This document shows, piece by piece, positions 1 through 52,938 of a DNA stretch of 64,000 nucleotides (positions are counted from its first letter, which is position 1; every line of letters begins with the position of its first letter). A program made the translations under genes and the position numbers. The notes under the pieces are model-generated. The model was not told the origin of the DNA. It saw only the letters and a program-made list of their open reading frames with translations, and did no database searches. The DNA is from Schmidtea polychroa (taxonomy: Eukaryota), in contig CM097885.1 of NCBI GenBank assembly GCA_044892525.1, positions 39,184,001-39,248,000 on the forward strand, read 5' to 3'.

Positions 1-1
1 A

Positions 2-3000
2 GGATTATGCGGATACTATCGCAAATTTATCAAAAATTATGCAGGAATTGCAAAACCAATCCAGGAATTAGTAAAGAAGGACATTTCGTTCATTTGGGGG
101 AAGGAACAACAAGAGGCGTTCGAAACGCTGAGAGATAAACTAATCGAAGCACCTATCCTCGTACACCCAGATTTTAAGAAGCCATTTCTATTGGCAACGG
201 ATGCAAGCGGGTACGCGGCAGGCGCGATTCTGGGACAATTAGATGATGAAGGAAAAGAGAGAGTAATCGGGTATTACAGTCGAACATTCAAAAAGCACGA
301 AAAGAACTATTCGGTAACAGAACGGGAAGCATTGGCTATAATACAAGCTATCAAACACTTCCGATACTTACTATGGGGACATGAGATATGTATAACCACA
401 GATCATCAACCATTAGTGTGGTTAGGGCAACATAAAGAAGCGTCCAGTAGACTGATGAGATGGGCCATGCAATTGCAAGAATACTCCCCATTTATAAAAT
501 TCAAAGCGGGAAGAGCAAATGCCAACGCCGATTGTATGTCAAGATTTATTTTCCCAGATTTGGTGGATTCAGAAATGCAACGCATATGCTTAATAGTAGC
601 GGAAGATTTGGATTTCTGTCAACTGCGAAAGGACCAACAAGAGGACGCGGAATTAAAACAAATTATCGATTATGTAAAAACCGGAAAGACAGATGTATAT
701 GCGAAAGACCAAAAATTAAAAGAACATATGGATAAACACCGACACCGATATATTATAGAGAAAGATTGGTTGCTGATAATGGATGGGGAAAAACGATTAA
801 TGTGTATACCGGAAAACCGACGAAAAGAGTTACTAACGCAATATCACGATGGGAGATTGGGAGGACATATGTCATCGAAAAAGACGTTAGCAAGAATGAA
901 ACAGAAATATTTTTGGCCTACGTTAACTGAAGATGTAACCGAATGGGTAAAAAATTGTCTAACTTGTGCAACCAGGAAGAATACTGGATCGAAATGGAAA
1001 GCACCTTTAACGCCAATGCCAGTACCAATAGAACCAATGACAATGATATCCATGGACGTAGTTGGTCCACTACCAGAGTCAGATAAAGGAAACGTTTACA
1101 TTCTAGTGATCACAGACTTTCTTACGAAATTCCCAGAAGCATTCGCGATGCCAGACCAAAAAGCTAAAACAATCGCAAAAATTTTGGTAGAAGAGATATG
1201 TTGCCGATATGGAACACCAAAACAAATCTTAACCGATCAGGGAACTAATTTTATGAGTGAGATAATGAGCGAAGTAACAAATTACTTCAAAATAGCAAAA
1301 CTAAGAACATCTCCATACCACCCTCAAACCAATGGGATGACGGAAAGATTTAATGGAACACTTATACAAATGTTATCAAACTACGTCGACCGTCACCAAC
1401 GAGATTGGGACGAATATATAAACCTATGTCTTATGGCATACAGAATGTCGATTCACGCATCAACGAAAATGAGCCCATTCAAATTAATGTACGGAAGAGA
1501 GTGTAATATGCCAATGGACCTGGAATACCAACCACCGATATCGCAGTATATGGAGATCGATGATTATGTTACGAAATTCAAGGAAAGAATGCAAGAGATT
1601 TGGGAAACTGCGGGATTAAATATCAAGTTCTACCAGGAAAGTTATAAAGATTTACACGATCGAAAGAAAAACGTGAAGCAACATACGTTTCAAACAGGTG
1701 ATTGGGTAATGATAGAAACCCCGGAATTAATTCCAGGAACCACAAAAAAGTTACAACGCAACGGAAAAGGACCATATGAGATCTTATTCGTAGGCGAAAC
1801 TAATGTAAGAGTGAAATTGGTAAATAACCCCTTTACCAGGCCAATATACGTAAACGTGGCACGATGCAAATCAATTCCAAAAACAGCCACTAGTCAACCA
1901 GAAGGCCGTACATTAACCACACGTTCGCAAACCTACAGAATGAACATGATGCAACAACTCGCAGAACCGATCACTGGACGATTAGGTATCCAACCATCAG
2001 AAGCGGAAAAGATTGTAAAAGAGGTAAAAATTAAAATACCTGGATGGGCAAAAGATCGATTAGATTTCGAAATATTAGGAGGATTATTGACGATGATCGA
2101 GAACTATGCAAATAGAGAAAGGACACACCCATTATTGCGAGTAGTCAAAAGCCAATGGCCAATATTATTTACCATAACAGATCATTACGGAGACACACCA
2201 TTACACAAACTCATGAAAGTAGGTAACAACGAGCAAATACTAGAAACAATAGAAGCATTTCACGACTGCAAGCGATCAACAGAACAAACAAACAACCAAG
2301 GTTACACACCATTAATGATAGCCGCAAACAGAGGCAAAACAAAAGACGTTATAACCGCATTACTCGATACTGGATCGAAAATAACTACACAAGACCACGA
2401 GCGGAAAAACGCTCTATATCATGCTATCGAAGGGAGAAGTACCGAGGCGTTCACGTCATTGATGGAACTACTATCATATGAGGACAATCGAGAAGTCGGA
2501 AACATGTATGATGGATTATTAACAGCGATCAAAGAGAAACTGACAACAATTACCGGAATATTAATTACATGGAGAAATCCAATTCAAAACGATTATATGA
2601 TCAACGTAAACGAAGCGTTCACGAGAGGAGAGAACACGCTGATGAGAGAAGCTATGAAAGGACATCATTTATTCGAAATCCCGAATCAATTACTAGAACG
2701 AGGGATAAAATTCACAAATCACAAAGATGAACAGTTAACAAAAAAGCGAATCGACACATTCGAAAAATCACTATTCCAATTTACTAACCAAGTACGAAAT
2801 AAATATTGGGAAACGGTAAGTGTGTTATATATGATGGACACAATGAATAACATCCGCGAGAATTACCTGGATATTATCCAAATACTTACAGCAGAGGAAC
2901 GAATCAATAATCCAAACGGAAAGAAAACGAAAATAAGGTATGAGAAATCCAGGGAATCAAAGTCAACAACGAACCAAACGGTCACAAACAACGTCATCGA

Positions 3001-5158
3001 AACCAAATCAATGAGTATAGATCAAGAGGCAATAATACGCAAAGCAAAAGAAGTGTTCTTTGAGGAAATGCTAGAGCTGCCAGACGAAATAATATTGTCC
3101 AAAATAATAAAAGCCGTACACACATACGCAAGAGATCAAACCACGGGTTTAGATATCGGGAAAATCAAAACCTTCTTGCCTCGAGCATTTACGATGGTAA
3201 CAAAGGATTCCAGAACACCTCTACAACAAGCAATACTAGCTGCAAAAGAGAATAGAGCAATAACGATCATGAGCATCCTTGGGGAGATGGGCGAGGAAAC
3301 CAACACGAAAAATGAACAAGGTGAAACCGCCATGATGTATGCAGCTATAACGAAAATACACCCAAAAACACTCCACATCCTACATCAATCAGGATCGAAA
3401 CTAGACGAAAGGTCCAATGAAGGAAATTCCACCTTGGACTGGGCAACCATACAGCCAAACTTAGAAATGATCAGATTTATTTGCAAAAATGCGACAAAGG
3501 AAGAAGTTGAAAACATGTGCAAAGACACATCTCAGTTTCAATGGAATACGATACGGAAAAATCTAGAAGCAATGAAATTATTATTAACCTGGAGAGTACC
3601 ACAAAATAATAAATATGCGATAAATGTAAACGAATTCTACGAAAACGGAGAAAATGCGATGGTAAAGAACACCCTAACTAAGGGGGGGACGCCTAAAATT
3701 ATTTTAATAGTATTAAATAGAGAAGACCTAAAATTCACGCAAAATCAGAACGAGCAACAACGAATTGGGAAACATCGTCGCATGCAATTGAGAGAGTTAG
3801 TTAAAGAATGGAATAGAAAGAGACATGCTGCAACGGGTAGAAAAGAGTTTGAATTCGAAGCAAAATTAGCAAGAAACAGAGTGCTAACAGCATATCGCAG
3901 ATTATTGAACGATATAAATGTCGAGGACGACATTTTAAACGACAGCGGGGGAGATAAAAACGATGACAATGACGGAAAAGGCCGAAAGGAGGATAAAGGG
4001 AAAAGAGAACCGGAAGAGGATAAACCGGAAAACAAGGATTTGGATACGAAAAGAGAGGGAAACAGGCCGGGAACCAAGACCAAAGAGGAGGAAAAATCGA
4101 ATAATGGAAAACAGAGGGTATGCCTACCTTTCACTAACAAAGAAATAGAGACAAATATGATATTAATGATAATTATGCTTACCATGATAGAGTTAGTAAC
4201 AGCTCAGGGAGGGACGAGAACGATAAAAGAAACCAAAGAAGCGGAGAATCAAGATAGCAAAGAGGATGAACTAAAGCAAGAAAAGAAAAAGCAAGCACAA
4301 GAGCAGCAGTGGGATTTAAAGGAAGAATGGGACTTAAAGGAAAGGTGCATACTAGGAAGATGCATGTCTAGAGCGTATCAGAAACTAGTACTGATAAATG
4401 AGGACACAGAACCAATAACAGAAGTAAGAATACAAGAAGCATACCGAAATCGAGACGGGAAGAGAATAACGAACGTTAAAGGAAAAGAGGTACACCTAGG
4501 AAAAGGTGGTGAAGTAGTAATAACGCAGCTCCAACCTAGAAGAGAGCACAAAGTCTGTATTTCAAGATTAGGACCAGGTGAGAGATGCCATCAATATGTG
4601 ACGCAGCAGCAGCCGCCGAAAGAATACACGGTTTGTATCTGGAGGAATGAATCAAAAAGAGAATGCCGACGATACCCAGGGAAAAGAGGAAAGAAAAGAA
4701 AAAACCACGACGAAAAGAACGAAGGAGGAAAGCACAAGAAAACCGGCGAGGAAGCTCAGGACAACTATGTTTCGGAGGAAGAGATGGAAAAAATACAAAA
4801 GATGGCAAAGGATGGTATGAACGAGGAAATAGCAAGAATACGGGAAATGATGAAAGGAAATGGCAAAAGAGGAAACGAGAAAGGTATAGAAGCGATATCA
4901 ACATTAACGAACAAGGAGAAACCAGAGAATATAAGCGTGAAGCAGATGATGTGGATCAGTGGGATAATAATAACAGGGGCCTTCCTAATCATAACGGGGG
5001 GAACAATAAAAATAATCAAAGATAAACGACATCGCGGAGAACTAGAGATGACCCGAATCAGAAATTTCCAACATCGAGTGAAACGACCAAGTGATATCAA
5101 ACAAGAACAGTGGGTGGAGGCCTGGAACGCTCAGCGCCCTCCAAACTCACGTATATAG
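2..5158 (+). CDS. pol: Pol polyprotein (5'-partial): RT thumb/connection, RNase H, integrase, ankyrin modules, membrane-anchored tail
   Basis: Frame is open from nt 2 (GLCGYYRKFIKNYAGIAKP...PFLLATDAS). RNase H: TDAS...EREALAI...TDHQPL. Integrase HHCC: HDGRLGGH...CLTC. Integrase core: MDVVGP...TDQGTNF...ERFN. GPF/Y-like: GDWVMI...GPYEI. No stop until 5158. Confidence 0.96.
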   Translation, partial: GLCGYYRKFIKNYAGIAKPIQELVKKDISFIWGKEQQEAFETLRDKLIEAPILVHPDFKKPFLLATDASGYAAGAILGQLDDEGKERVIGYYSRTFKKHEKNYSVTEREALAIIQAIKHFRYLLWGHEICITTDHQPLVWLGQHKEASSRLMRWAMQLQEYSPFIKFKAGRANANADCMSRFIFPDLVDSEMQRICLIVAEDLDFCQLRKDQQEDAELKQIIDYVKTGKTDVYAKDQKLKEHMDKHRHRYIIEKDWLLIMDGEKRLMCIPENRRKELLTQYHDGRLGGHMSSKKTLARMKQKYFWPTLTEDVTEWVKNCLTCATRKNTGSKWKAPLTPMPVPIEPMTMISMDVVGPLPESDKGNVYILVITDFLTKFPEAFAMPDQKAKTIAKILVEEICCRYGTPKQILTDQGTNFMSEIMSEVTNYFKIAKLRTSPYHPQTNGMTERFNGTLIQMLSNYVDRHQRDWDEYINLCLMAYRMSIHASTKMSPFKLMYGRECNMPMDLEYQPPISQYMEIDDYVTKFKERMQEIWETAGLNIKFYQESYKDLHDRKKNVKQHTFQTGDWVMIETPELIPGTTKKLQRNGKGPYEILFVGETNVRVKLVNNPFTRPIYVNVARCKSIPKTATSQPEGRTLTTRSQTYRMNMMQQLAEPITGRLGIQPSEAEKIVKEVKIKIPGWAKDRLDFEILGGLLTMIENYANRERTHPLLRVVKSQWPILFTITDHYGDTPLHKLMKVGNNEQILETIEAFHDCKRSTEQTNNQGYTPLMIAANRGKTKDVITALLDTGSKITTQDHERKNALYHAIEGRSTEAFTSLMELLSYEDNREVGNMYDGLLTAIKEKLTTITGILITWRNPIQNDYMINVNEAFTRGENTLMREAMKGHHLFEIPNQLLERGIKFTNHKDEQLTKKRIDTFEKSLFQFTNQVRNKYWETVSVLYMMDTMNNIRENYLDIIQILTAEERINNPNGKKTKIRYEKSRESKSTTNQTVTNNVIETKSMSIDQEAIIRKAKEVFFEEMLELPDEIILSKIIKAVHTYARDQTTGLDIGKIKTFLPRAFTMVTKDSRTPLQQAILAAKENRAITIMSILGEMGEETNTKNEQGETAMMYAAITKIHPKTLHILHQSGSKLDERSNEGNSTLDWATIQPNLEMIRFICKNATKEEVENMCKDTSQFQWNTIRKNLEAMKLLLTWRVPQNNKYAINVNEFYENGENAMVKNTLTKGGTPKIILIVLNREDLKFTQNQNEQQRIGKHRRMQLRELVKEWNRKRHAATGRKEFEFEAKLARNRVLTAYRRLLNDINVEDDILNDSGGDKNDDNDGKGRKEDKGKREPEEDKPENKDLDTKREGNRPGTKTKEEEKSNNGKQRVCLPFTNKEIETNMILMIIMLTMIELVTAQGGTRTIKETKEAENQDSKEDELKQEKKKQAQEQQWDLKEEWDLKERCILGRCMSRAYQKLVLINEDTEPITEVRIQEAYRNRDGKRITNVKGKEVHLGKGGEVVITQLQPRREHKVCISRLGPGERCHQYVTQQQPPKEYTVCIWRNESKRECRRYPGKRGKKRKNHDEKNEGGKHKKTGEEAQDNYVSEEEMEKIQKMAKDGMNEEIARIREMMKGNGKRGNEKGIEAISTLTNKEKPENISVKQMMWISGIIITGAFLIITGGTIKIIKDKRHRGELEMTRIRNFQHRVKRPSDIKQEQWVEAWNAQRPPNSRI
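2170..3770 (+). other. Two duplicated ankyrin-repeat modules within the pol ORF
   Basis: Ankyrin motifs GDTPLHKL, GYTPLMIAA, KNALYHAI, RTPLQQAI, GETAMMYAA, GNSTLDWA. Each module ends in a shared cap: TWRNPIQNDYMINVNE...GEN and TWRVPQNNKYAINVNE...GEN. Confidence 0.85.
4157..5158 (+). other. Env-like/type I membrane segment at the pol C-terminus
   Basis: In-frame signal-peptide-like MILMIIMLTMIELVTAQ at 4157, a Cys-containing ectodomain, TM-like MMWISGIIITGAFLIITGGTIKII (about 4946-5017) and a basic cytoplasmic tail. Confidence 0.6.
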
Positions 5159-5318: not shown

Positions 5319-5665
5319 ATGGATCAAGGAAATAACGAAATGAACCACAATACAGTAACTGAAGAATTATGGAAGCAACAATGTGCCGTATTAGCACAAT
5401 TAGTGTCCAATTTGCAAGAACAAGGATTGACGATGCACAGAGTATGAATAGAGGATTTAGTTATTTGAAGATAATTGAAGACCAGAGGTTGAAAATCGAA
5501 CAAATGCAAAGAGAGATAGAGAGGATAACCCAATATAGCCGTAGACAGGAAATTGAACTAAACAGAATGATGGAGGAAGCAGAACAGACAGAAATAGAAG
5601 ACTGGTCGGAATGGTTAATGAATAGAGAGGAGAGCGGACACGAAGCCGACTCTTCCGAACCCTAA
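5319..5665 (+). CDS. Small coiled-coil/acidic cargo ORF, possibly frameshifted or stop-start coupled
   Basis: A 42-aa ORF at 5319-5447 (MDQGNNEM...LAQLVSNLQEQG) ends in a TGA that overlaps ATG 5444 (ATGA). That ATG is in the 5369-5665 frame (EDQRLKIEQMQREIER...). Confidence 0.5.
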
Positions 5666-5750
5666 ACCAAACCTAGCTTAAAATGTAAATAATTGTAAAT
5701 AAAATATCGAACCTGTATCGATAAGAACTATTTGTACATATAATTATAGA

Positions 5751-7139
5751 ATGGATAAACGACAAAGAGAAGAGTTCAGAGAGATTGTCGAGCAAGTCCG
5801 AAAATCTACAACGATCAGAATACACAAACATGTTATGTGCGGAATATGTGAAAAGTTGTTAAAGGAACCTCACCAAACGCAATGTGGATGCAGAGTATGT
5901 AAAGAATGTATCAGTGAAGCAATAAAGAATAGACCACAGAGGTGCCCGGTGTGTAAAGAGACACTAATATCGAGTTTAGAAGACACTAACGAGGATAAAG
6001 CCGCAGTGAAAGACATGTTAAACACCAACCTGGGATGCAAAAATGCCCCATGCGAATGGAAAGGAGTAATATGGAAGGTAGTACAACATATGGGAGAATG
6101 TATGTACAGAATTGGCCAGTGTGAAAGGTGCCATAAAACCATTCGAGCAAGCGAAGAAAAAGAGCATCAAAGGCAGTGTGAGGAGAGATTAGAAAGATGT
6201 GAACACTGTGGAGAAATAGATACGTGGAAAAATCTCACCCTCAAACATCACAATGTCCAAGAGGAGAGAGTATGTGCAGAGTTCAGTGGGGAATGCCCAA
6301 ACGGATGTAACCAAGGGGAAATAATGAAGGTGGCACAGCATCTAAGGGAATGTGAAAAGAAAAGAATGACATGCGTACTAGGCAAATGGGGTTGTCAGAA
6401 ACTACTACACCGAGGGGAGTTACCACATCATTTAGTAGAAAATGCTTCAACCCACGCAGAAATGTGGTCGACTGCGTTACAAGAAAGCGAGGAGAAAGTA
6501 AAACAAATGGAGATAGAGATAGCATCGTTGAAAGTATTAGTCAAAGAACTACTAGAAGAAAGGGAAGCGTTCGAAGAAGCCCGAGCAAACATAAAGATGC
6601 AAATAAACCGAATAGAAATCAGTAATAATCAGGCCAAGGAGCTACATCAGAAAATACGGGAAATAAATCTAAATGAGATAACCCCAACAGCACCCTACAT
6701 ATGGAAGATTACGGGAGTAAAGGAAAGAATACGAAAAGCAAAAACCGGAGAAGAGACAAGAATAACAAGTCCTGCATTCCATTCTTGGAAAAATGGGTAC
6801 AAAATGAAAATGAAGATATATCCCAACGGGGACGGAACCGGATTAGACACACACTTTTCGATTTTCTTTCTGTTATGTAAAGGAGAATACGACGAAATAA
6901 TAGAGTGGCCGTTCCAGGCGAAAATCGATATTGCACTAATGAATGACCGAAACATCCACGAACAAAGCTTCAAGACAACTGGAAACCAAATGTGTTACCA
7001 GAGACCTACGGAAGAAGAAGGATCAGCAACAGGAGCACCTACGTTCATCCTACAACAAAAAGTAGAAGATATGGCAAGAAAGGGCACGGTGTATATCAAG
7101 ATGACCGTAAGGAAAGAGGAGAAGGGCAGAACGGAGTAA
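5751..7139 (+). CDS. TRAF: Intronless full-length TRAF-family protein (RING, TRAF zinc fingers, coiled coil, MATH), TRAF2/3-like
   Basis: RING CGIC...QTQCGCRVCKEC...CPVC; linker DKAAVKDM...CKNAPCEWKG; TRAF-type zinc fingers; MATH domain YIWKI...SPAF...GYKMKMKIYPNGDGTGLDTHFSIFFLLCKGEYDEIIEWPF. Confidence 0.95.
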   Translation: MDKRQREEFREIVEQVRKSTTIRIHKHVMCGICEKLLKEPHQTQCGCRVCKECISEAIKNRPQRCPVCKETLISSLEDTNEDKAAVKDMLNTNLGCKNAPCEWKGVIWKVVQHMGECMYRIGQCERCHKTIRASEEKEHQRQCEERLERCEHCGEIDTWKNLTLKHHNVQEERVCAEFSGECPNGCNQGEIMKVAQHLRECEKKRMTCVLGKWGCQKLLHRGELPHHLVENASTHAEMWSTALQESEEKVKQMEIEIASLKVLVKELLEEREAFEEARANIKMQINRIEISNNQAKELHQKIREINLNEITPTAPYIWKITGVKERIRKAKTGEETRITSPAFHSWKNGYKMKMKIYPNGDGTGLDTHFSIFFLLCKGEYDEIIEWPFQAKIDIALMNDRNIHEQSFKTTGNQMCYQRPTEEEGSATGAPTFILQQKVEDMARKGTVYIKMTVRKEEKGRTE

Positions 7140-7333
7140 ACGATCGAATAATGTTGTATATAATAATCTGTATATATCGGTGTATATAACCAATAAAATA
7201 TTATATAATAATAGTATGAAAAACCCTAAATACGTAAACCCAAAAATGATGCGAAAATTTCCAAAGAAACAGCAAATAATGAATAAATTCCTTTTTCATA
7301 ATAAAAAGCTTAATCGATGTCTATGATTTAGAG

Positions 7334-8389
7334 ATGACACAAGAGAAACTAACCGAAACTGCGATAGTCCCAACCAATGTCAACAAGACACAAATTCCCC
7401 GAGAACATAACAAAAAATGGAACAAAGTAATGTTCCAACTAACTAATCTCACCCGAAATCACATCGAAGAAGCTAGAGAGGATGAGAATAGTCAATACCA
7501 ATGGTTAATACACAACTTAAGAGCGGAAGCAGAAGCATGCAAAAGAGCATCAAAATGGGCGTCACTAGAAAATACCCGCCAAGAAGCGCACAGCCACTAC
7601 TTAAAGCAGCTAGTGCAGGAAGCGAGAAAGAGACTTACCGATGAGAACACCAAGCGCGAAGCGGAAAAGCAAATAGAAGGAAGGAAAATGATGCACTTAG
7701 TGGCAGAAGCGAGAAAATGGAAAAGACAAAGCAATGAAATGAAAAAAGAGATGAAAGAATTGCCCATGAGACTCGGATATGAGAGCGAACAGGGTAAATG
7801 GGAGGAAAATTTAATAATAAAGGAAGAACTGAAACGGTTGAAAAAGGTCGCCGCCCGAAGCCAAACATGGCAGATGAAGGCTATGGAGTTTGAACGACAT
7901 TTGGCAATAAAATGCGACATAAGAGAGCACGAGAATGCCGCAATGGAAGAGATGATAACCCAGCAAGCAGGACGGGTTGTGGAATTAGTAAATCAGGTCG
8001 AAGAGATGAAAAGAGACCTTAATGGATTACAAGGATCGTTAGAACAAAGAAACATGGTCCTGGCGGGAAAAAACAGAAAATTAGAAAACGAGAGGAAAAT
8101 GTATACCGAAAATATCAAAAACTTGGAAATAGAAATTGAAAAATGGAAGGGCGACGAGAAAATCAAGGCCTTAGATAGACAAGTAGAGGCGAAAGACGAA
8201 GAGACAAGGTATCTCACTTATCTGCTCGACGAAGAGCTGAATATCACTCGAGCTCTAAGAGACGAAGTTAATGAATTGAGAGCTCAAATCCCCCAATATT
8301 ACCTACCCTATGACCCTATTGCGATACAGTTGCATCCAGCGGTCGATAGTGATGAAGGTTATGTGGGACAGGAGGAAACCTTCGTATAA
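7334..8389 (+). CDS. Uncharacterised coiled-coil cargo protein (351 aa)
   Basis: Long intact ORF with the same A-rich composition as pol; E/K/R heptad-rich; no recognisable domain. Confidence 0.75.
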   Translation: MTQEKLTETAIVPTNVNKTQIPREHNKKWNKVMFQLTNLTRNHIEEAREDENSQYQWLIHNLRAEAEACKRASKWASLENTRQEAHSHYLKQLVQEARKRLTDENTKREAEKQIEGRKMMHLVAEARKWKRQSNEMKKEMKELPMRLGYESEQGKWEENLIIKEELKRLKKVAARSQTWQMKAMEFERHLAIKCDIREHENAAMEEMITQQAGRVVELVNQVEEMKRDLNGLQGSLEQRNMVLAGKNRKLENERKMYTENIKNLEIEIEKWKGDEKIKALDRQVEAKDEETRYLTYLLDEELNITRALRDEVNELRAQIPQYYLPYDPIAIQLHPAVDSDEGYVGQEETFV

Positions 8390-8502: not shown

Positions 8503-9264
8503 ATGCATAAGTATAAGTCGCACTATAGCGCACCATTAACTGTACATATTACAGATATGAAAATCGAGGAAATAATAGAAATTACGAGCGACGTGGAAGA
8601 GGGAGAGATTGAGGCAGAAACAACAGAAACACAAACGTTAAAGGCCAAGTTACGGGAAGAGAGGGACGAAAACGAGAGACTAATAAACAAATATATAGAA
8701 GACCGAAAAATGATTAAAATACTAAAGAAGGAGTGCGAAGCGTTAGGAGAAATAAAGAGAGAAGCTGAAGAGAAGAATGAATGGTTGCAAGAACAACGAA
8801 CACGAGGAAGAAACTGGGAAAAGATTGCAGAGGAACTATGGCAAGAGAGGGCAAGCTTCAAGGCAGAAGAAGTAATCCAAGATTATTGGAAAACAGAGGC
8901 GAAAGAACACCAAATAACTATAAATAAATTAAATCGACAATTGGAGGAAAAACAACGAGAAAGTGAGGAAATGAAGAAATGGATTCGCAAGTACCAAGAG
9001 ATCGAGAGAAAACAACAACAACAACAACAACGAAACCTTTCGCAGGAAAACGAACAAGATTTCCTACAAATCGAACTAAAAAGGAATCTCGACAAAAAAC
9101 GGGAAGAAATTAAGAGACTGAAAAAGGAGATAAGGCACATGAAAAGGGAGGCCCGTGAAAAGAACAGACAGTTGGAAATGCTGCCCGAGTTAAGACACAG
9201 AGTCATTAAAGCGGAATCCACCCTGATGAGAATCGCCGAAAATAACCCAAACCAGAATCATTAA
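8503..9264 (+). CDS. Uncharacterised coiled-coil cargo protein (likely start ATG 8557)
   Basis: Intact 253-aa ORF with an acidic N-terminus, then heptads and a polyQ tract. ATG 8557 follows the shared TGTACATAT...AG motif. Confidence 0.75.
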   Translation: MHKYKSHYSAPLTVHITDMKIEEIIEITSDVEEGEIEAETTETQTLKAKLREERDENERLINKYIEDRKMIKILKKECEALGEIKREAEEKNEWLQEQRTRGRNWEKIAEELWQERASFKAEEVIQDYWKTEAKEHQITINKLNRQLEEKQRESEEMKKWIRKYQEIERKQQQQQQRNLSQENEQDFLQIELKRNLDKKREEIKRLKKEIRHMKREAREKNRQLEMLPELRHRVIKAESTLMRIAENNPNQNH

Positions 9265-9305
9265 ATTAAGGGTCACTAAAACCAATTGTAAATAAACCAT
9301 AATGA

Positions 9306-9965
9306 ATGTATAATAGTATCATGCGAGGCGAGATGATGATAACAATGACGGTATTGATGATTCTGACGGAGAACAAACAAGTAAACGCCCAACCGAAAAT
9401 CGTGCGAGATTACCGAAATCAAAATCAAGAACCTAAACGAGAATCCGGCCAATGCACATACCCTATGACAGTAAAAATCCATATCATCCAAACCCTTCAA
9501 TCAACCCGTTCACACATCAACAACATCCAAACAATGTGTAAAAAGAATCCCATTTGTAAAATGATAAACAAACAAATCCTCGAACAAATCCAACAATTCG
9601 ACCAGCTAGAACAACAAATGCAACAAGAGAATTTTGAAAATCTTGTAGAAAAGCCAAAAACACCTCCCGAAATCAATGACACCCATTATCTCATATATGT
9701 GGTGATCGCAGAAACCCTCCTCCTATGTCTACCAATACTCATGAAGATTTACGAAGTTAGAAATAAATGTAGAACCCCGACAGCAATAAGAGTAACCTCG
9801 AACAGAAATCCTCAAGAAGTGCCACTGACAAATCTTAACCCAACCCCATTCCGACCTCGAATCCCGAGTAACCAACCAATCCAGCCGAATTCTTACAGTC
9901 AGACCTATCTCAACATCAATACCCAAACCAACCAACAACCGCCGGCAGAAGCATCAAATGGTTAA
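9306..9965 (+). CDS. Small predicted type I membrane cargo protein
   Basis: Hydrophobic N-terminus MMITMTVLMILTENKQVNAQ, short helical ectodomain with two Cys, TM-like YLIYVVIAETLLLCLPILM, and a Pro/Asn/Gln-rich tail. Confidence 0.7.
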   Translation: MYNSIMRGEMMITMTVLMILTENKQVNAQPKIVRDYRNQNQEPKRESGQCTYPMTVKIHIIQTLQSTRSHINNIQTMCKKNPICKMINKQILEQIQQFDQLEQQMQQENFENLVEKPKTPPEINDTHYLIYVVIAETLLLCLPILMKIYEVRNKCRTPTAIRVTSNRNPQEVPLTNLNPTPFRPRIPSNQPIQPNSYSQTYLNINTQTNQQPPAEASNG

Positions 9966-10583
9966 CAGTTCATAAACTCTAACTCAAACATTGGTGATAT
10001 CATATGTAGAAACTTTTATTGTATATACAAACTATCACCTTAAGTGATACTTGCTTGGTCTTGATTTGACCTATATCTTAGAATAAAATTGTTTTATTAT
10101 TGTAATATAATTGTTTCGATATATCCTTTTTATGAATGCATGAAGTAAGATAACTATGCAATTGCGGGACGCAATTTTGATGGGTCCCCGAGTGATTTGT
10201 TGGGCTGAATCGAAGGGTAGTTGAGAAATTAGGGCAAACTTAACTAAAATAAAATAAAAAATAAAAACAAATAAATTGACAAACAAAATAGAATAAAACA
10301 TAAGAAAAACAATAATTAGAAAATAGGAATTAAAACAAAAAATATAAAGATGAGAAAAAATTAAAATAGGACAATAGAATGGCGGAAAACAACGTAAAAT
10401 ATAGTAAATAATAAGAAAATTAAGGAAAATAAATAAAAACATAATTTTAATAAAGAAAGTAAGAAGAAATAACTCAAAAACAAGGAAAATAAATTAAATT
10501 AATAAAATTAAGCGGTACTCAATTCTAATTGGTCCGCGCAAACAAAAAATTAATATATAAGCAGGCATTAAAAACATAACAAT

Positions 10584-10659
10584 TACTGTTAATCAACCAC
10601 CTCAATAGGTAAGCGAAATTTAAACAAAAATACTGTTAATCAACCACCTCAATAGGTAA
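10584..10659 (+). repeat. 29-bp direct repeat pair in the LTR (U3 enhancer-like)
   Basis: TACTGTTAATCAACCACCTCAATAGGTAA at 10584 and 10631; also present in the second LTR copy. Confidence 0.8.
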
Positions 10660-12633
10660 ATCTATTCTACGACAGAACAGAACTCCAGCAACTAACGCAC
10701 GATAACTCACGAGGACAATCCCAAGATTCAAGAGATTTTTACAGAACTAGACGATATTCGAGCATTAACTGATTCGACATAGTACCCTTTTCGACTCAGC
10801 CCATACTTGTATCAATCATTCAGTAAGGATTTTTGATTGCTTATTTTGAATTTTTAAGTAATGCGTATAGTTTAATAATATTTTTAATTTAAAAAATGGT
10901 TTTTCTTTTCGTTTGATTTTCGAATGCTTTACTTAAATTAATAATTTGCTTAATAATAAATGATTTGCTCGTTAAGAATTATTGATCTTTTATGAATTAA
11001 TTTGTATGAATTATTGGAGACTATTCAATTTTGCGAGAAACGTGGCGTTGAGATACTCTATGTCATGGTGTGAGGTGCCTTCGGGAGCTCCACCGGTGGA
11101 CATAGGGTATTTCAATCACGCAGCTAGATTGGGCCGAAATGTGAGGGCTTCTTCACGGGTCCAATTGCTGAAGGTGCGACTAAAAGCTATAGGTAAATGG
11201 TGGCAGAAAATTGATAGTCATGTAGTGATTGAAAACAAAGATATATAATAAAGGAATCGGAGAGTTTGGATGTATTCGCGCAGTGATTGAGGGTGTCGCA
11301 CTATCGTCTTCAAATATCGTTTTTGCTAAACCTAAAAATCTCTCTATCATCAATGTAGGTTGTGCGTCAAAAATTGTTCAAACCTTAATGAGGCTATCTG
11401 TGACATATCTTTGATGTTCATACCTTTCACTCAGAATCTGTTCCGACCAATTTTAGCCTATGACCTTTTGAACTATTATTCCGTTCACCTAAAAGTTCTC
11501 TTAAAGACATCGTTGCAAGGAAGCTCAAAGTAGATTGCTTCAGATAATTATTGGAATTATTCCAAATGACTGTTTACGGATAAATTGTAGAACTACGTAA
11601 AATAATTTATTATAGATAATTGTTAGAACTTCATAAAACGAGTTTGTTCCAATTAAAATTTTGAATTACATAAAATAATTTACTTCAATTAATTTTTTTT
11701 TGAATTATATAAAAATATTTACCTATAATCAATTATCATAATTACACGAACTATTGGCATCAAATAATTTAAAATGAAAAATGCAACCAATTCGAACCAA
11801 GAAAATATATTTCTTCAAGTTAACCGATAATCTTGTTAAATACAAAATTCCAGTATTACATGAGGTTGGCAATCCAGCAGAGATAGGAAAAAATCCTCCA
11901 GCACTTAGAGAGTAGATTGATAAACTAGGCTTGAGGAATTAGAGACGAAAAATCCACCCTTGGAGCAAGCAGTATCCAACATTTGCAATATAGATAATTT
12001 TAATTTTTCCAATAATCCGGTGAGAATTAGTAAATCATCACCATATGCCGTAGAATTGTGAGCGAATACGCGGTGGATAAAATTCTGAGAGAATGCCATC
12101 ATGCAAACATTCAACGCCTGCATTGGTAGTATAATTAAGCGGGTGAAAGCGCACCTGGCATGCGTCACCAGTTGCAGACTTACCTAATAGCCAAGTACAG
12201 TAGACAAAGTCACACACGCATCTACTCATGAAAAATTAGATCGAACATGCCAATTAAACTACCGACAGCTATCAGATTTCACCGCTTCGGATTAAGAGTC
12301 AATCACTGGGCTGACATTACCTTATCTACCCAGCAGGTATGATCGACTACTAGCTCACACTGATACCGTGCTCAGTTGTTATAAAGACACTAACATTTAA
12401 TGATAAACTCGATCATAATTATGAGTATTCTCTCGTTATTATCTTAGCATGAATGGCACCGAAATTATTTCATTTTTTGACATAGTTATCATTAATATTA
12501 GTATCGAATATTGTTAAATAAATATTATGTAAACCAGGTAAAACACATACGTGAGTAATTAAAGAAAATGAATAAACAATTAAAAATTTAAATAACCTTC
12601 CGTTTATCCTGTAGGAACTAATCAACAGGCATT

Positions 12634-13757
12634 ATGGACCCCTTTTCCATAGATAGTCACTCGACCCCAATATATGATACACTCAGTAAAAGCACTCGTA
12701 CGGGGGGAGAAGTCGACAATTTAAATCGATTCTCGGTAAACGTGAAATAATGACTCCAAGCGGATTAAATAAATAATCAGTTTCATCGACATAGAATTTC
12801 TCTCACAAACAGTAATATCTTCCTTTTCCTTGTGCGAAATCTGGGTTGATTGATTTATCTTCTTATAATTAAAGCCCCGAAAGGGTACGAGAATCCATCG
12901 CGTAGTAGAACTTGTCCTGACTGGTAAACCCTTATTTTTGTCTATGATCAGTACAGTATGAATGTAGTCAGGTGGTGACGCTCCCGCTGATTTAATTATT
13001 TTCATTTTCTTTTTCACAGTCGCTCAAAATGTTGCCAAATTCCAAGCCCGTTCTTCGACCTTGTTTTTCTTGCTCCGACAAGAATTCAATTATCAAAGAG
13101 CTCCAGGCCCAAATTGGCAAGCACAAAAGAAGGATAGATGAGTTAGAGGGGACATGGTTTAGTCCCACCCAGATGAAGGAGGCTCAGAAGAAGCTGCACC
13201 GAAGCGAGCACTGTAGAGACGCGTTGATTTCCGAGAGTCGGGCGCAGAGGAGCCTGATAAAAGAGCAGTCGGAGGCGCTGCACAAATTGTACGTCCAGGC
13301 CGCAACTACAAGGAAGATCGCGAAGATCCCGATTAACGAAGCCAGTAACCTTTTCCCAGCACATCATGATATCTCTGGAAAGTCCTGCCATGGGTGCGTA
13401 GAGACCGAGCTCTCACCTAAAGGACCAGAAATCATCTTTACCGGAACCAGTAAAGTGCTACCTGCGATAGCATCCACCTCAGCAGCACCCTCGACCAACC
13501 AAACAGCATCGAAGCCAAAGCGTCGACAATTATCGAGAGCAGAACGAAAGAAAAAACAGCGGGAACGCATAACCGCCAAACAGAACCAGCAATCGTCGGA
13601 TCATCCAATCAAAGTCATCAACCCCCCTGCAGCAATCGATTTAGCACCAGTGATCTCAGGGCGAATCATCTCCGCCGCTGGTGTTACCTGGGAGGAAAAC
13701 GCCTCTGAGTTTTTCGATTTGGAAGATCTATTGGCAGACTCGGAGTGGGAGAAATGA
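12634..13757 (+). CDS. LTR-encoded spliced gene (exons 12634-12735 and 13020-13757; 279 aa): CxxC, coiled coil, basic NLS-like segment, acidic tail
   Basis: 34-codon exon MDPFSID...NRFS ends at a GT donor (12736). A polypyrimidine TTTTCATTTTCTTTTTCACAG acceptor at 13019 joins it in frame (SLK) to the 242-aa ORF. Contains KPKRRQLSRAERKKKQRER and ends FFDLEDLLADSEWEK. Confidence 0.72.
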
Positions 13758-13891
13758 GAACTTCCCCGTAAAAAGTCTTCGTTCTCTGAATTGACCTGAA
13801 CATTGTCTGATAACATTTTACCTTGTCTCTTTTCCCGTTGTCGTGAACTTTATTGTATAGGTGTTAGATATATTTGTGTGATAATCTTAAT

Positions 13892-13897
13892 AATAAA
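13892..13897 (+). promoter_or_regulatory. Candidate polyadenylation signal in the LTR
   Basis: AATAAA 135 nt after the LTR ORF stop, followed by a GT/T-rich tract. Confidence 0.5.
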
Positions 13898-16800
13898 CCA
13901 TTTTTGTCTGCATACGTTCTTTTTGTGTTCATCTTAAGACAGTTGAGTTGAAATTGGTAAATGGTATTGAGAGTCATAAAATTATGAGGAGCATTAGTCA
14001 GTTGGTAAACTCAGCTAGAAATATTGCGATGGGGCGACGGAATGAGTAGACGTAAGTCCTTCTATCGGCAGTCAGGGTTGGGAAGTCGAGGCCTCAGTAA
14101 GGAGTAGTCCGAAGGAGCTGGCTCACCTGCTTACTGGCGTCTCGCCGGCATAGCACAGTTCCAACGTGAAGCAATTCACGGGTGCTATGTTGGAGTGTAA
14201 GTTATGTACGGGTCCCGCTCGGCGATGACCAAATAAATGACGGGCGAAATCGAGGTGGGCATTCATCCTCTAGACTAAAGCTGCACTAGAAAGGGGTCAT
14301 CCGAGTAGTGTACCCGCAACAACTGTAAAAATAAAAATTGTGGAACGTTCTGTGCTGTTCCGGGCTTTATTTTATTCGTAGGATTAACCTTTGAATATTA
14401 TTACAAGCGCTAAATTTTTGGGCGATTATACTAAAAATGTTTGGGGTATTTATATTAGATTTTTAAGCCAGATGTTATTTTAAAATAAATTATATTAATT
14501 TCTAGTGTTAAGAATTGTATTTCAAGTATGATCTTAAGAACAAATTATATTATTTTACCTAAAGAAATATTATTTTATTTTTATTTTCAGTTAATTCAAG
14601 AATACTTGAATTATTCTGACTAAAATTTTTCAGCTGTTTATTTATTAAAGAAATTTTACCTTTAATTAAAATTTATTGTTATTAATTTAAAATATTAAAT
14701 TAAAAATTATTAAAATATTTTCCCTTGTATAAAATTATATTGTAATCATTTATTAAAAAGTTAACTAATAAAATACTCAGTCTATTAAATATATACACCC
14801 GATAAAATATACATCATTAATCAGACAGTATTATACATAAATAATCAGACAGAAATTAATCAGAATAATAATAAAGGATAAAATATGCACAGATTGTTAG
14901 CTATTTCGAGGATAATGTTTGATCAATAATATTTACACAAATTAAATCGTTCAAGAATAATGTTTTGTTGAATTAACTTGAATTGATTGGATTGTTTCTG
15001 GATTGAATTGGGTTGCATGGAATTGGGTTGTTGATTGTTGGGAAATTAGATTGTCTATTTATCTACGCTCTTCGGTGTATACATTGACTCGGTATCTCTT
15101 GGGCCCTGTCCTATAATACCGGTTGAGGTTAAATGTGGTGATGTGCCTACCTTCATCATCCAACATACTTAATCTCCTTGAGTAACTCTGAGTTGTTATT
15201 GTCGTTCCCGACCAATATAAAACAATCTTTCATCACTATTACAATATATTACAAAACTACAGTAAACTTTATTGTCAAGTCACTGAAACATTATATTAAT
15301 AATACAGGATACTAATAATCAAAGGAATAGAAATTAGAACCCGGAACTTTAATAATATAAATAAGTATTATTGTCGACAAAGGTTCAAATATGCACTCCT
15401 CATCTGAGGCATTCATAACATTTGCATAGTATATTACTTCACTTTTTGGTGGTACTTCTTTGACAGATTCGTGTTTCATTATAATTTGAAATGAATTTAA
15501 AGTTTCAGTGACAGACGAGACCCATTAACTATTGACTGACTCATTTAATTTGTCTGTTTTCAGAAATCTATATGAAATCTATTGATCCTGTTAGCTTCCA
15601 CTGGCGTCATGAGAATCGCGGCGGGTTGGTCGAGAGTTTGAGTGGTCTGTGACTTGACAGCTCTGTGGCAACTGCTTGTTTGTCAAGGATGTGAGATTTA
15701 GAGACTGAAGGTTTATCTGTTTGATAATCTTGTTTTAATTAATTGTCGGGGTATTTTGAAACTTTAATTGAAAGTTTTTTACAGAAATTAAAACAACATT
15801 TCGATTTTCCTGGGTGTTCTTTACTATTGCTAATTTAATTTGATTTAATTAACAAATTAGGAGTGATGACACTAAAGCTTTTAGGGAAATTTTGCAAGTA
15901 GTTGCTGATATATCAATGATAGGTTAATTTGGTGTTGCTTTTTACTTGTTTTACCCGATTGCAAATAAAGTTCAAGTTATTTCAAAAGGTAATGATAGAC
16001 AATATTTATGAGAATCATTGGCTGATGGGTCTAAAAGTTAAGTATAATAGTTATAAACCAATTGCTAGAGGTTCTTAAGTCATTTTAAACATAAAAGAAG
16101 ATCAAATTAAATATCTGAATGAAAAGATCCAATCATCAACCTAGAATTATATTCTATTGACTAAAAGTATGCAACAAAAGCATCGGAAAGTTCTCCATTG
16201 ATGCAAATAATAAAAGAGAAAATTTATTTTCTAACAAAATTACTAAACTTCATACAATTCAAATTGAAAGAAATTAACGATGTTAAGATTAAGTTTCACA
16301 ATGCAAAATAAAGAAATAACCAAATACCAGATGATGAAACTACAGTAACAAAAGAGAAGGAAAGTGAAGAAACCGAAAGTAAATCGAAACTTGAATATTT
16401 GGATGATGACGATAAAAATATAAAGATTAAAAGGAAAAGAAAAGATGCTGGTGTAGAAGAGTTAAATAAAAATAACCCGATTTAGACAATAATCCAAAAT
16501 CGAAAAATATTAATTAATTTAATTATGTTTAAAAAGCCAAGAAAAAGCCTATTATCATTAAGTTTTAAGAAAAAATCCTTCATTGAAATTATGATAAAAT
16601 TATGTATGTCGAAAATTCAAATTTTTGTGTCAATTTGAATTCTTCTGTAAATCTAATCATATTTCTTGACCAGCCATTTCAACCTTATACCAAACTTTCA
16701 ACAGCTTTAGTTCACCTGATTGTAAAATTAAGTTTTGTAATCAGAATTCAAAATCTTATTTAATGGAGAGTTAGGTGAATAGAGAAAAATAAGTACATGC

Positions 16801-28114: not shown

Positions 28115-28330
28115 TTAAACTTTTGAATCACAAATACAGATCACAAATTCAGTGGCTTCGAGAAAGTGACGGAAGTGCTTGCTAGCTTTGTATATTGCAA
28201 GTAATTTTCTGTCGTATGTACAGTATATAGATTCTGTCTTCGTTAACAGTCTGCTAAAAAATGATATTGGTCGCCAATTTTGCTCCAGTACTGCTCCAAT
28301 ACCTGATCCTGAGGCAGCTGTTCTCAAGGT
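28115..28330 (-). pseudogene. Degenerate Gypsy RNase H fragment
   Basis: TAASGSGIGAVLEQNWRPISFFSRLLTKTESIYCTYDRKLLAIYKASKHFRHFLE; the catalytic TDAS motif is mutated to TAAS. Confidence 0.85.
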
Positions 28331-32975: not shown

Positions 32976-35900
32976 TGTTGGGCTGAATCGAAGGGTAGTT
33001 GAGAAATTAGGGCAAACTTAACTAAAATAAAATAAAAAATAAAAACAAATAAATTGACAAACAAAATAGAATAAAACATAAGAAAAACAATAATTAGAAA
33101 ATAGGAATTAAAACAAAAAATATAAAGATGAGAAAAAATTAAAATAGGACAATAGAATGGCGGAAAACAACGTAAAATATAGTAAATAATAAGAAAATTA
33201 AGGAAAATAAATAAAAACATAATTTTAATAAAGAAAGTAAGAAGAAATAACTCAAAAACAAGGAAAATAAATTAAATTAATAAAATTAAGCGGTACTCAA
33301 TTCTAATTGGTCCGCGCAAACAAAAAATTAATATATAAGCAGGCATTAAAAACATAACAATTACTGTTAATCAACCACCTCAATAGGTAAGCGAAATTTA
33401 AACAAAAATACTGTTAATCAACCACCTCAATAGGTAAATCTATTCTACGACAGAACAGAACTCCAGCAACTAACGCACGATAACTCACGAGGACAATCCC
33501 AAGATTCAAGAGATTTTTACAGAACTAGACGATATTCGAGCATTATCTGATTCGACATAGTACCCTTTTCGACTCAGCCCATACTTGTATCAATCATTCA
33601 GTAAGGATTTTTGATTGCTTATTTTGAATTTTTAAGTAATGCGTATAGTTTAATAATATTTTTAATTTAAAAAATGGTTTTTCTTTTCGTTTGATTTTCG
33701 AATGCTTTACTTAAATTAATAATTTGCTTAATAATAAATGATTTGCTCGTTAAGAATTATTGATCTTTTATGAATTAATTTGTATGAATTATTGGAGACT
33801 ATTCAATTTTGCGAGAAACGTGGCGTTGAGATACTCTATGTCATGGTGTGAGGTGCCTTCGGGAGCTCCACCGGTGGACATAGGGTATTTCAATCACGCA
33901 GCTAGATTGGGCCGAAATGTGAGGGCTTCTTCACGGGTCCAATTGCTGAAGGTGCGACTAAAAGCTATAGGTAAATGGTGGCAGAAAATTGATAGTCATG
34001 TAGTGATTGAAAACAAAGATATATAATAAAGGAATCGGAGAGTTTGGATGTATTCGCGCAGTGATTGAGGGTGTCGCACTATCGTCTTCAAATATCGTTT
34101 TTGCTAAACCTAAAAATCTCTCTATCATCAATGTAGGTTGTGCGTCAAAAATTGTTCAAACCTTAATGAGGCTATCTGTGACATATCTTTGATGTTCATA
34201 CCTTTCACTCAGAATCTGTTCCGACCAATTTTAGCCTATGACCTTTTGAACTATTATTCCGTTCACCTAAAAGTTCTCTTAAAGACATCGTTGCAAGGAA
34301 GCTCAAAGTAGATTGCTTCAGATAATTATTGGAATTATTCCAAATGACTGTTTACGGATAAATTGTAGAACTACGTAAAATAATTTATTATAGATAATTG
34401 TTAGGACTTCATAAAACGAGTTTGTTCCAAATAAAATTTTGAATTACATAAAATAATTTACTTCAATTTTTTTTTGAATTATATAAAAATATTTACATAT
34501 AATTAATTATCATAATTACACGAACTATTGGCATCAAATAATTTAAAAATGAAAAATGCAACTAACTCGAGCCAAGAAAAATATATTTCTTCAAGTTAAC
34601 CGAGGATCTTTTTAATTAAATAAAAAATTCCAGTATTTCATGGGGCTGGCAATCCAGCAGGGACAGGTAGAAATCCTCCAGCACTTAGAGAGTAGCTCGA
34701 TAAACTATGTTTGAGGAATTAGAGACGAAAAATCCACCCTTGGAGCAAGCAGTATCCAACATTTGCAATATAGATAATTTTAATTTTTCCAATAATCCGG
34801 TGAGAATTAGTAAATCATCACCATATGCCGTAGAATTGTGAGCGAATACGCGGTGGATAAAATTCTGAGAGAATGCCATCATGCAAACATTCAACGCCTG
34901 CATTGGTAGTATAATTAAGCGGGTGAAAGCGCACCTGGCATGCGTCACCAGTTGCAGACTTACCTAATAGCCAAGTACAGTAGACAAAGTCACACACGCA
35001 TCTACTCATGAAAAATTAGATCGAACATGCCAATTAAACTACCGATAGCTATCAGATTTCACCGCTTCGGATTAAGAGTCAATCACTGGGCTGACATTAC
35101 CTTATCTACCCAGCAGGTATGATCGACTACTAGCTCACACTGATACCGTGCTCAGTTGTTATAAAGACACTAACATTTAAGGATAAACTCGATCATAATT
35201 ATGAGTATTCTCTCGTTATTATCTTAGCATGAATGGCACCGAAATTATTTCATTTTTTGACATAGTTATCATTAATATTAGTATCGAATATTGTTAAATA
35301 AATATTATGTAAACCAGGTAAAACACATACGTGAGTAATTAAAGAAAATGAATAAACAATTAAAAATTTAAATAACCTTCCGTTTATCCTGTAGGAACTA
35401 ATCAACAGGCATTATGGACCCCTTTTCCATAGATAGTCACTCGACCCCAATATATGATACACTCAGTAAAAGCACTCGTACGGGGGGAGAAGTCGACAAT
35501 TTAAATCGATTCTCGGTAAACGTGAAATAATGACTCCAAGCGGATTAAATAAATAATCAGTTTCATCGACATAGAATTTCTCTCACAAATAGTAATATCT
35601 TCCTTTTCCTTGTGCGAAATCTGGGTTGATTGATTTATCTTCTTATAATTAAAGCCCCGAAAGGGTACGAGAATCCATCGCGTAGTAGAACTTGTCCTGA
35701 CTGGTAAACCCTTATTTTTGTCTATGATCAGTACAGTATGAATGTAGTCAGGTGGTGACGCTCCCGCTGATTTAATTATTTTCATTTTCTTTTTCACAGT
35801 CGCTCAAAATGTTGCCAAATTCCAAGCCCGTTCTTCGACCTTGTTTTTCTTGCTCCGACAAGAATTCAATTATCAAAGAGCTCCAGGCCCAAATTGGCAA

Positions 35901-37122
35901 GCACAAAAGAAGGATAGATGAGTTAGAGGGGACATGGTTTAGTCCCACCCAGATGAAGGAGGCTCAGAAGAAGCTGCACCGAAGCGAGCACTGTAGAGAC
36001 GCGTTGATTTCCGAGAGTCGGGCGCAGAGGAGCCTGATAAAAGAGCAGTCGGAGGCGCTGCACAAATTGTACGTCCAGGCCGCAACTACAAGGAAGATCG
36101 CGAAGATCCCGATTAACGAAGCCAGTAACCTTTTCCCAGCACATCATGATATCTCTGGCGGGTCTTCTTCTCCAGTCGGAAAGTCCTGCCATGGGTGCGT
36201 AGAGACCGAGCTCTCACCTAAAGGACCAGAAATCATCTTTACCGGAACCAGTAAAGTGCTACCTGCGATAGCATCCACCTCAGCAGCACCCTCGACCAAC
36301 CAAACAGCATCGAAGCCAAAGCGTCGACAATTATCGAGAGCAGAACGAAAGAAAAAACAGCGGGAACGCATAACCGCCAAACAGAACCAGCAATCGTCGG
36401 ATCATCCAATCAAAGTCATCAACCCCCCTGCAGCAATCGATTTAGCACCAGTGATCTCAAGGCGAATCATCTCCGCCGCTGGTGTTACCTGGGAGGAAAA
36501 CGCCTCTGAGTTTTTCGATTTGGAAGATCTATTGGCAGACTCGGAGTGGGAGAAATGAGAACTTCCCCGTAAAAAGTCTTCGTTCTCTGAATTGACCTGA
36601 ACATTGTCTGATAACATTTTACCTTGTCTCTTTTCCCGTTGTCGTGAACTTTATTGTATAGGTGTTAGATATATTTGTGTGATAATCTTAATAATAAACC
36701 ATTTTTGTCTGCATACGTTCTTTTTGTGTTCATCTTAAGACAGTTGAGTTGAAATTGGTAAATGGTATTGAGAGTCATAAAATTATGAGGAGCATTAGTC
36801 AGTTGGTAAACTCAGCTAGAAATATTGCGATGGGGCGACGGAATGAGTAGACGTAAGTCCTTCTATCGGCAGTCAGGGTTGGGAAGTCGAGGCCTCAGTA
36901 AGGAGTAGTCCGAAGGAGCTGGCTCACCTGCTTACTGGCGTCTCGCCGGCATAGCACAGTTCCAACGTGAAGCAATTCACGGGTGCTATGTTGGAGTGTA
37001 AGTTATGTACGGGTCCCGCTCGGCGATGACCAAATAAATGACGGGCGAAATCGAGGTGGGCATTCATCCTCTAGACTAAAGCTGCACTAGAAAGGGGTCA
37101 TCCGAGTAGTGTACCCGCAACA
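32976..37122 (+). mobile_element. Solo LTR (4147 bp) of the giant Gypsy family
   Basis: TGTTGGG...CCCGCAACA with a perfect 4-bp TSD TACT (32972-32975 and 37123-37126); near-identical to 10198-14321. Confidence 0.93.
35414..36558 (+). CDS. Second copy of the LTR-encoded spliced gene (exons 35414-35515 and 35800-36558; 286 aa)
   Basis: Same splice sites and an intact frame; differs from copy 1 by an in-frame 21-bp indel (GSSSPVG) and G-to-R near the C-terminus. Confidence 0.72.
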
Positions 37123-37289
37123 TACTCATTGATTTTCAACCATTGTGTACAGCACCAACATGGTTATCACCATGGGTACACAGATAGCGTAAAGACAATA
37201 GTCATGAAGGCGTTAAGAAAGGAGTCGATTCAACATCTATAAATACTCCTAACATATTTATAAAATAGAATGGCACACTCCTAAGCGTC

Positions 37290-52588: not shown

Positions 52589-52938
52589 TATCTTATATAC
52601 AATCCTTCATACTACTTATATATACTACTCATTAACCTGTATTTCGGATAAAAATTTATATCTTATATACAATCCTTCATACTACTTATATATACTACTC
52701 ATTAACCTGTATTTCGGATAAAAATTTATATCTTATATACAATCCTTCATACTACTTATATATACTACTCATTATCCTGTATTTCGGATAAAAATTTATA
52801 TCTTATATACAATCCTTCATACTACTTATATATACTACTCATTAACCTGTATTTCGGATAAAAATTTATATCTTATATACAATCCTTCATACTACTTATA
52901 CATACTATTCATTAACCGGTATTTCGGATAAAAATTTA
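52589..52938. repeat. Five tandem 70-bp units
   Basis: TATCTTATATACAATCCTTCATACTAC...GTATTTCGGATAAAAATTTA starts at 52589, 52659, 52729, 52799 and 52869. Confidence 0.92.

Follow-up and report, generated by a model that had tools for sequence, protein, structure and literature searches.

The window analysed in this work is a stretch of 64,000 nucleotides of Schmidtea polychroa DNA (assembly GCA_044892525.1, contig CM097885.1, positions 39,184,001 to 39,248,000 of the forward strand), and all coordinates refer to this window. The left part of the window consists of six open reading frames (ORFs) on the + strand that are separated by spacers of 41-210 nt, none of which is broken by a stop codon or a frameshift. 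The first is the 3' part of a large ORF (ORF1, 1..5158), which follows the frame of base 2 for 1718 codons without a stop and is open at the left edge of the window. It is followed by an accessory ORF of 98 aa (5369..5665), by the TRAF gene of 462 aa (5751..7139), and by three more accessory ORFs of 351 aa (7334..8389), 253 aa (8503..9264), and 219 aa (9306..9965). The TRAF ORF begins 85 nt past the preceding ORF. A long terminal repeat (LTR) of 4.12 kb (10198..14321, +) starts 232 nt past the last accessory ORF, and a second copy of this LTR is found further to the right (32976..37122, +).

The TRAF gene was characterised using ORF calling, Pfam, PDB sequence searches, alignments, AlphaFold2, and Foldseek. 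It is a single open frame that runs from ATG to stop over 462 codons with zero interruptions, where the longest stop-free run obtained in 20,000 shuffles of its bases was 221 codons. The gene encodes, in order and on the + strand, a C4C4 RING (5838-5954), five TRAF-type zinc fingers (~6036-6455), a coiled coil (6444-6671), and a MATH/TRAF-C domain (6696-7115). Pfam identified the RING at residues 29-68 and the MATH domain at residues 316-449 (E 3e-25). The zinc fingers are visible as five Cys/His clusters between residues 96-235 that are invariant or nearly invariant across alignments of 12 and 50 TRAFs; the Pfam zf-TRAF model did not reach E 0.01 on this protein. In the PDB sequence search, the C-terminal half matched TRAF domains from TRAF1, TRAF2, and TRAF3 (E ~1e-27), and the N-terminal 160 residues matched the RING-zinc-finger parts of TRAF6, TRAF5, and TRAF2 (E down to 6e-15).

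The AlphaFold2 model of the TRAF protein, for which an alignment of 50 relatives was used as input, has a mean pLDDT of 92.9. The modelled protein exhibits the RING, a row of small zinc-finger units, a long helix at residues 232-307, and a beta-sandwich at residues 316-455. The best Foldseek matches of the model are the TRAF domains of TRAF3, TRAF2, and TRAF1 (E 1e-18 to 1e-19), with target TM-scores of 0.75-0.83 against TRAF2/3. The TRAF protein is TRAF2/3-like by architecture and fold. The intact RING-ZnF-coiled coil-MATH protein that had been described in the initial annotation of this DNA is therefore borne out by the ORF, Pfam, PDB, AlphaFold2, and Foldseek results, and the gene can be called intronless insofar as its ORF is continuous.

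The zinc ligands of the RING are C30, C33, C45, C47, C50, C53, C65, and C68 (C4C4). Since all eight ligands are Cys, the fourth ligand is Cys and not the usual His. In the 12-sequence alignment, 10 of the 11 relatives belong to a planarian-type group that includes three named Dendrocoelum lacteum TRAFs. Cys replaces His in the RINGs of eight of these ten planarian-type relatives, among them Dendrocoelum lacteum TRAF-2, TRAF-4, and TRAF-5; one of the other two has Phe and one is without that stretch. The fish TRAF in the same alignment has His at the fourth ligand. The Cys-for-His change is therefore a trait of the lineage and not a mark of the element. The initial annotation was right that the His had been replaced and that a zinc ligand had been kept, but the replacement is not peculiar to the element copy, as it is found in planarian TRAFs generally.

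The ligand groove of the MATH domain was compared with that of TRAF2 using groove residue numbers that were verified by counting along PDB chain 1czz_A. Y395, D399, F410, and F447 of TRAF2 are identical in the window TRAF, and R393K, L432I, F456Y, and S467T are conservative swaps. The TRAF2 residues S453-455 are replaced by Q-M-C and C469 is replaced by A. Planarian TRAFs have x-x-Cys where human TRAF2 has Ser453-Ser454-Ser455, and the window TRAF shares this pattern.

ORF1 begins in the window with the tail/connection of a reverse transcriptase (RT) and an RNase H that extend to ~484. An integrase zinc domain (806-982) and an integrase core (1031-1324) follow on the same strand (+). The Pfam matches on ORF1 (RT_RNaseH, E 7e-36; Integrase_H2C2, E 4e-21; rve, E 6e-13) are those of a Ty3/gypsy-type pol. 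Two ankyrin modules (2048-3220 and 3221-4090) lie in frame after the integrase. They are 29% identical over 157 aa (E 8e-10) and, as judged from their sequences, represent an ancient internal duplication. The stretch that comes after the repeats is conserved between both modules. The remaining tail of ORF1 (~4100-5158) is highly charged, very rich in Lys/Glu, and has two hydrophobic segments (~4145-4216 and ~4937-5020); it may be a membrane protein that is translated in frame with pol. The single-sequence AlphaFold model of the tail (pLDDT 44) was too poor for use. Several Cys lie between the two hydrophobic segments.

The four non-TRAF accessory ORFs differ in character. The 98-aa ORF is helical, charged, and without a family match. 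The 351-aa and 253-aa ORFs look coiled-coil-like and are without a significant family match. The 219-aa ORF has a hydrophobic N-terminus and a predicted membrane segment at residues 126-151. Pfam at relaxed thresholds identified no credible match in these four ORFs, in the ORF1 tail, or in the ORF that is borne by the LTR. Splice-acceptor-like motifs lie directly 5' of the start codons of the TRAF ORF (TTATAG, 5730-5750, +) and the 351-aa ORF (TTTAG, 7315-7333, +). The window contains three occurrences of the nonamer TGTAAATAA, each of them in a spacer between accessory ORFs (5684-5702 and 9287-9295, +), a count that is not above chance (3.1 expected) for a motif that was chosen after being seen.

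The base composition of the TRAF gene is that of the element. The A content of the TRAF gene is 40.9% and that of ORF1 is 41.4%; the A content at third positions is 44.7% and 45.0%, and the third-position A-T skew is 0.50 and 0.47, respectively. The third-position skew in the coding sequences of three free-standing relatives ranges from -0.01 to 0.14, values that come from other organisms and are thus indicative only. The A-T skew remains at 0.3-0.5 from 1 to ~9965 and stops before the LTR. The rest of the window has a skew of ~0 and 23-32% GC. The earlier statement that the TRAF gene is as A-rich as pol is confirmed by both measures of A content. The TRAF gene also shares its strand with pol and has pol on one side and the 3' LTR on the other, which upholds its earlier assignment as cargo of the element.

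The two LTR copies are direct repeats that are 98.6% identical over ~4.15 kb and lie 22.8 kb apart. Both copies begin with TGTTG and end with CAACA. The right copy is bounded on either side by the 4-bp TACT (32972-32975 and 37123-37126), and is therefore a solo LTR with its target-site duplication, which shows that the repeat belongs to a mobile element as its LTR. GATT and ACTG flank the left copy. Since these flanks do not match, this copy does not represent a solo insertion and instead agrees with a 3' LTR that has its partner past the left edge of the window; we read it as the 3' LTR of the element that bears the TRAF gene. The distance from the middle of the RT to the end of this 3' LTR is already 14.3 kb, and the 5' half of the element and its 5' LTR lie beyond the window. 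No clear classical polypurine tract was found 5' of the left LTR.

A single 27-kb element bounded by both LTR copies was considered and rejected, as the right copy has its own TACT and the outer flanks are mismatched. Between the copies lie 18.6 kb of AT-rich DNA that is non-coding save for a short decayed gypsy RNase H fragment, and this likewise speaks against such an element. Each LTR copy bears an ORF of higher GC and without a family match (242/249 aa; 13029-13757 and 35809-36558, +). The two copies of this ORF have 96.8% amino acid identity against 98.6% nucleotide identity, which is about the neutral expectation, so the ORF is probably not a constrained gene.

The homologs of the TRAF protein were identified using an exhaustive profile-free search against 1.84 billion representative proteins, which returned 6027 matches. 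Among these matches, no relative of the window TRAF is nearer than ~40% identity, and the best full-length matches have 30-35% identity. The closest among the top organism-named full-length matches are Dendrocoelum lacteum TRAF-2/-4/-5 and Dugesia japonica TRAF2-like A, followed by fish, cnidarian, and nemertean TRAFs. The UniParc entry P0005 and the window TRAF are reciprocal best matches (~35% identity), and they form a pair with 95% bootstrap in the neighbour-joining tree. The truncated sequences P0001, P0018, and P0023 join this pair in the N-terminal tree with 61-67% support. The resulting subclade sits among planarian TRAFs, with deeper nodes that are weakly supported.

No identical database entry was found in an exact look-up of the TRAF sequence. 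In word-indexed protein searches, for which the queries were the TRAF, the ankyrin region, and a profile of four sequences, no relative exceeded 40% identity. The scan of metagenome and viral contigs found none with the TRAF, and with pol its sole matches were two gypsy elements that are unrelated and 35% identical. The top-scoring matches P0002 and P0016, which have multiple MATH domains, were dropped since they come from metagenome-assembled eukaryotic contigs without retroelement genes. Such top-scoring matches, at two loci (L003 and L004) on eukaryotic metagenome contigs, are very long tandem-MATH proteins of up to 3052 aa and 19 matched stretches. One of these loci lies amid a cluster of neighbouring MATH genes, and there are no retroelement genes nearby.

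The window TRAF retains 40 of the 41 columns that are conserved in at least 90% of the 49 other TRAFs, and 53 of the 57 columns that are conserved in at least 80% of them. This retention places it mid-field among the 50 TRAFs. The retention of 40 of 41 conserved columns at ~30% identity is not what unconstrained drift would leave. Together with the tree and the element-like composition, it indicates an old capture from the planarian TRAF lineage that has long been resident in the element and under selection. The view of the TRAF as a host-derived gene that has been maintained, which had been put forward before, thus agrees with its planarian affinity, its conserved columns, and the presence of all its zinc ligands.

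Giant gypsy-like elements named Burro/GYPSM1 have been described from Schmidtea mediterranea by Jurka (2007) and by Grohme et al. (2018), per PMC6431247. Multi-kb LTRs, a total length above 30 kb, and dugesiid or geoplanid planarian hosts characterise them, and SUMO-like, dUTPase, and env modules are further parts of their cargo. The motifs reported in them are RING (AIR1), Smc-like, MATH_TRAF_C, BIR, ankyrin, and BCL2-like, and several species have Burro elements in which TRAF modules recur (PMC6431247). The TRAF module of Burro-1 is described as located inside a polyprotein of 4,873 aa, upstream of the protease, and BCL2-like, SUMO-like, and dUTPase motifs lie upstream of the RT (PMC6431247). 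A Burro-like element of Dugesia (Girardia) tigrina encodes MATH_TRAF_C in a separate accessory ORF that is upstream of ORF1 (PMC6431247). Arkhipova and Yushenova suggest that the Burro modules interfere with host apoptosis and ubiquitination (PMC6431247).

The element in the window resembles Burro/GYPSM1 in its Ty3/gypsy pol, its multi-kb LTRs, and its occurrence in an AT-rich planarian-type genome, and also in its host-derived modules, which are RING, coiled coil (Smc-like in Burro), MATH_TRAF_C, and ankyrin. By its architecture and the literature, the element would be of the Burro/GYPSM1 kind, a comparison that was made with Burro as described. No BIR, BCL2-like, SUMO-like, or dUTPase module was found by Pfam in the part of the element that lies within the window. 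Since the BCL2-like, SUMO-like, and dUTPase motifs of Burro-1 are upstream of the RT, their counterparts would fall outside the window. The window TRAF is free-standing and downstream of pol and ankyrin, whereas the TRAF of Burro-1 lies within the polyprotein. The element of D. tigrina, as described, is similar in having TRAF/MATH in a separate accessory ORF, but that ORF is upstream of ORF1 whereas the window TRAF ORF is downstream of pol. The finding had been treated as novel in the initial annotation; however, RING, MATH_TRAF_C, and ankyrin in planarian Burro/GYPSM1 elements are already published (PMC6431247). What may differ here is where the TRAF lies, namely downstream of pol and ankyrin in a full-length ORF of its own.

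Other carriers of such genes can be compared with the window TRAF. The cellular TRAFs of planarians have all of its domains, a C4C4 RING like its own, and likewise a Cys where TRAF2 has Ser455, but they are 30-35% identical to it, and the window TRAF is far more A-biased and lies inside a retroelement. The RING+BIR module of Burro1 reportedly shields the stem cells of planarians against caspase-mediated apoptosis (Lee et al. 2026, cited by PMC13465017). This B-IAP of Burro1 and the IAPs of baculoviruses are likewise host-derived, RING-containing regulators of cell death on mobile or viral genomes. They differ in having a BIR domain, which was not found in the window, where the window TRAF has zinc fingers and MATH. 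Foldseek against BFVD identified TRAF homologues of megalocytivirus iridoviruses and Klosneuvirinae (E 1e-15 to 1e-28). These differ in that they come from large DNA viruses whose hosts are fish or protists; their identity is 14-22%, and they are independent acquisitions.

The findings in this work are best explained by the TRAF ORF being a maintained accessory gene of a giant Ty3/gypsy element of the Burro/GYPSM1 kind, an explanation that we consider probable with the proposed signalling role included. An ancestor of the element would have taken up a planarian TRAF2/3-like gene. The captured gene would then have acquired the A-rich composition of the element, with its RING, zinc fingers, coiled coil, and MATH domain staying intact. 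The TRAF protein is expected to trimerise via its coiled coil and MATH domain. In cells that express the element, it could act as an adaptor or an E3 that joins or competes with the TNFR/TRAF signalling of the host in cell death and innate immunity. The TRAF and ankyrin here, as the IAP and BCL2-like modules in Burro, may keep the host cell alive and tolerant during expression of the element. Expression of the TRAF would most likely resemble that of complex retroviruses and rely on a subgenomic transcript made by splicing; the acceptor-like TTATAG and TTTAG before the start codons would fit this mode of expression.

Three other explanations were weighed against this one. This copy of the element, or its TRAF, could now serve the host as a co-opted and immobile relic, as has been proposed for the IAP module of Burro1. 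Burro1 is reportedly engaged in a host-transposon mutualism (Lee et al. 2026, cited by PMC13465017), and planarians have abundant TRAF transcripts (PMC6109357), both of which speak for such a role. However, the six visible ORFs, including those parts that encode RNase H and integrase, are uninterrupted, and this together with the 98.6% identity of the LTR copies gives the appearance of a young and potentially autonomous element instead of a relic preserved for the sake of one gene. We regard co-option as unlikely.

The TRAF could also be a recent passenger without function, where the processed mRNA of a host gene entered one copy of the element and has not yet decayed. The gene is intronless and single-copy within the window, and no sister copies were found in the protein databases or in the metagenome and viral contigs searched, as would be the case for such a passenger. 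Against this stand its fully element-like composition, which is unlike that of its free-standing relatives, and its ~35% identity to the nearest known relative with 40 of 41 conserved positions nonetheless retained. In addition, the portion of the spacer 3' of the TRAF stop that was read shows no poly(A) remnant, and TRAF modules are recurrent in Burro elements of several species (PMC6431247). This makes a passenger very unlikely. A processed pseudogene or retrogene was likewise rejected, as the gene is intronless but its frame is intact, no poly(A) is evident in that portion of the spacer, and the residues conserved in the family are kept.

The last explanation, in which a host gene merely adjoins the retroelement or was placed beside it by an assembly join, can draw on the many TRAF genes of planarians (PMC6109357) and on the 5' end of the element lying beyond the window, but it is highly improbable for a gene that lies between pol and the 3' LTR, 85 nt past the previous ORF and with three same-strand ORFs after it, in a tract whose A-skew is unbroken from 1 to ~9965 and whose flanking DNA is unskewed with 23-32% GC.

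The maintained accessory gene of a Burro-like element thus remains the preferred explanation, and with it the relatives of the window TRAF can be considered. The A-skew at codon positions 1-2, as implied by amino acid composition, is 0.32-0.41 in the subclade of the window TRAF (P0005, P0001, P0018, and P0023). It is 0.19-0.27 in the named planarian TRAFs and most other relatives, and 0.32 in P0067. P0005, P0001, P0018, and P0023 may, on this measure, be element-borne as well. TRAF/MATH transcripts are known to be expanded in S. mediterranea (PMC6109357), and the small A-skewed subclade gives a soft hint that elements could have contributed to the expansion of planarian TRAFs. A wider proposal is that the window TRAF and these four sequences form a distinct planarian TRAF clade that travels with Burro-like elements, that a sizeable share of the TRAF expansion is cargo or derived from it, and that the position of the module has shifted among elements; we put this forward tentatively and with more doubt than confidence. 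If true, the TRAF module would have moved between a place in the polyprotein, an upstream ORF, and a downstream ORF, either by module shuffling or by repeated capture.

The locus represents a retrovirus-like genome with a complete and well-preserved host adaptor of immunity and cell death. It fits the emerging view that the giant retroelements of planarians are equipped with a set of genes that regulate apoptosis and ubiquitin. As the phenomenon has already been published for Burro, the locus does not represent a new kind; it is of value as an example that is clean and that may be a variant in position. It also provides a concrete and intact locus for asking what share of planarian TRAFs is element-borne and by what route such cargo genes are expressed.

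A few other features were identified in the window. Rfam and tRNA scans of the window returned no matches. A gypsy-type RNase H remnant (28118-28327, -; Pfam E 3e-17) is 43% identical to that of the element and lies in AT-rich non-coding surroundings. An ORF with a Tc5/pogo-type transposase DNA-binding domain (58008-58589, -; E 3e-10) is evidently a fragment of a DNA transposon. A tandem array of ~7 units of 70 bp (52518-53010), the central copies of which are 98-99% alike, adjoins a masked run of N.
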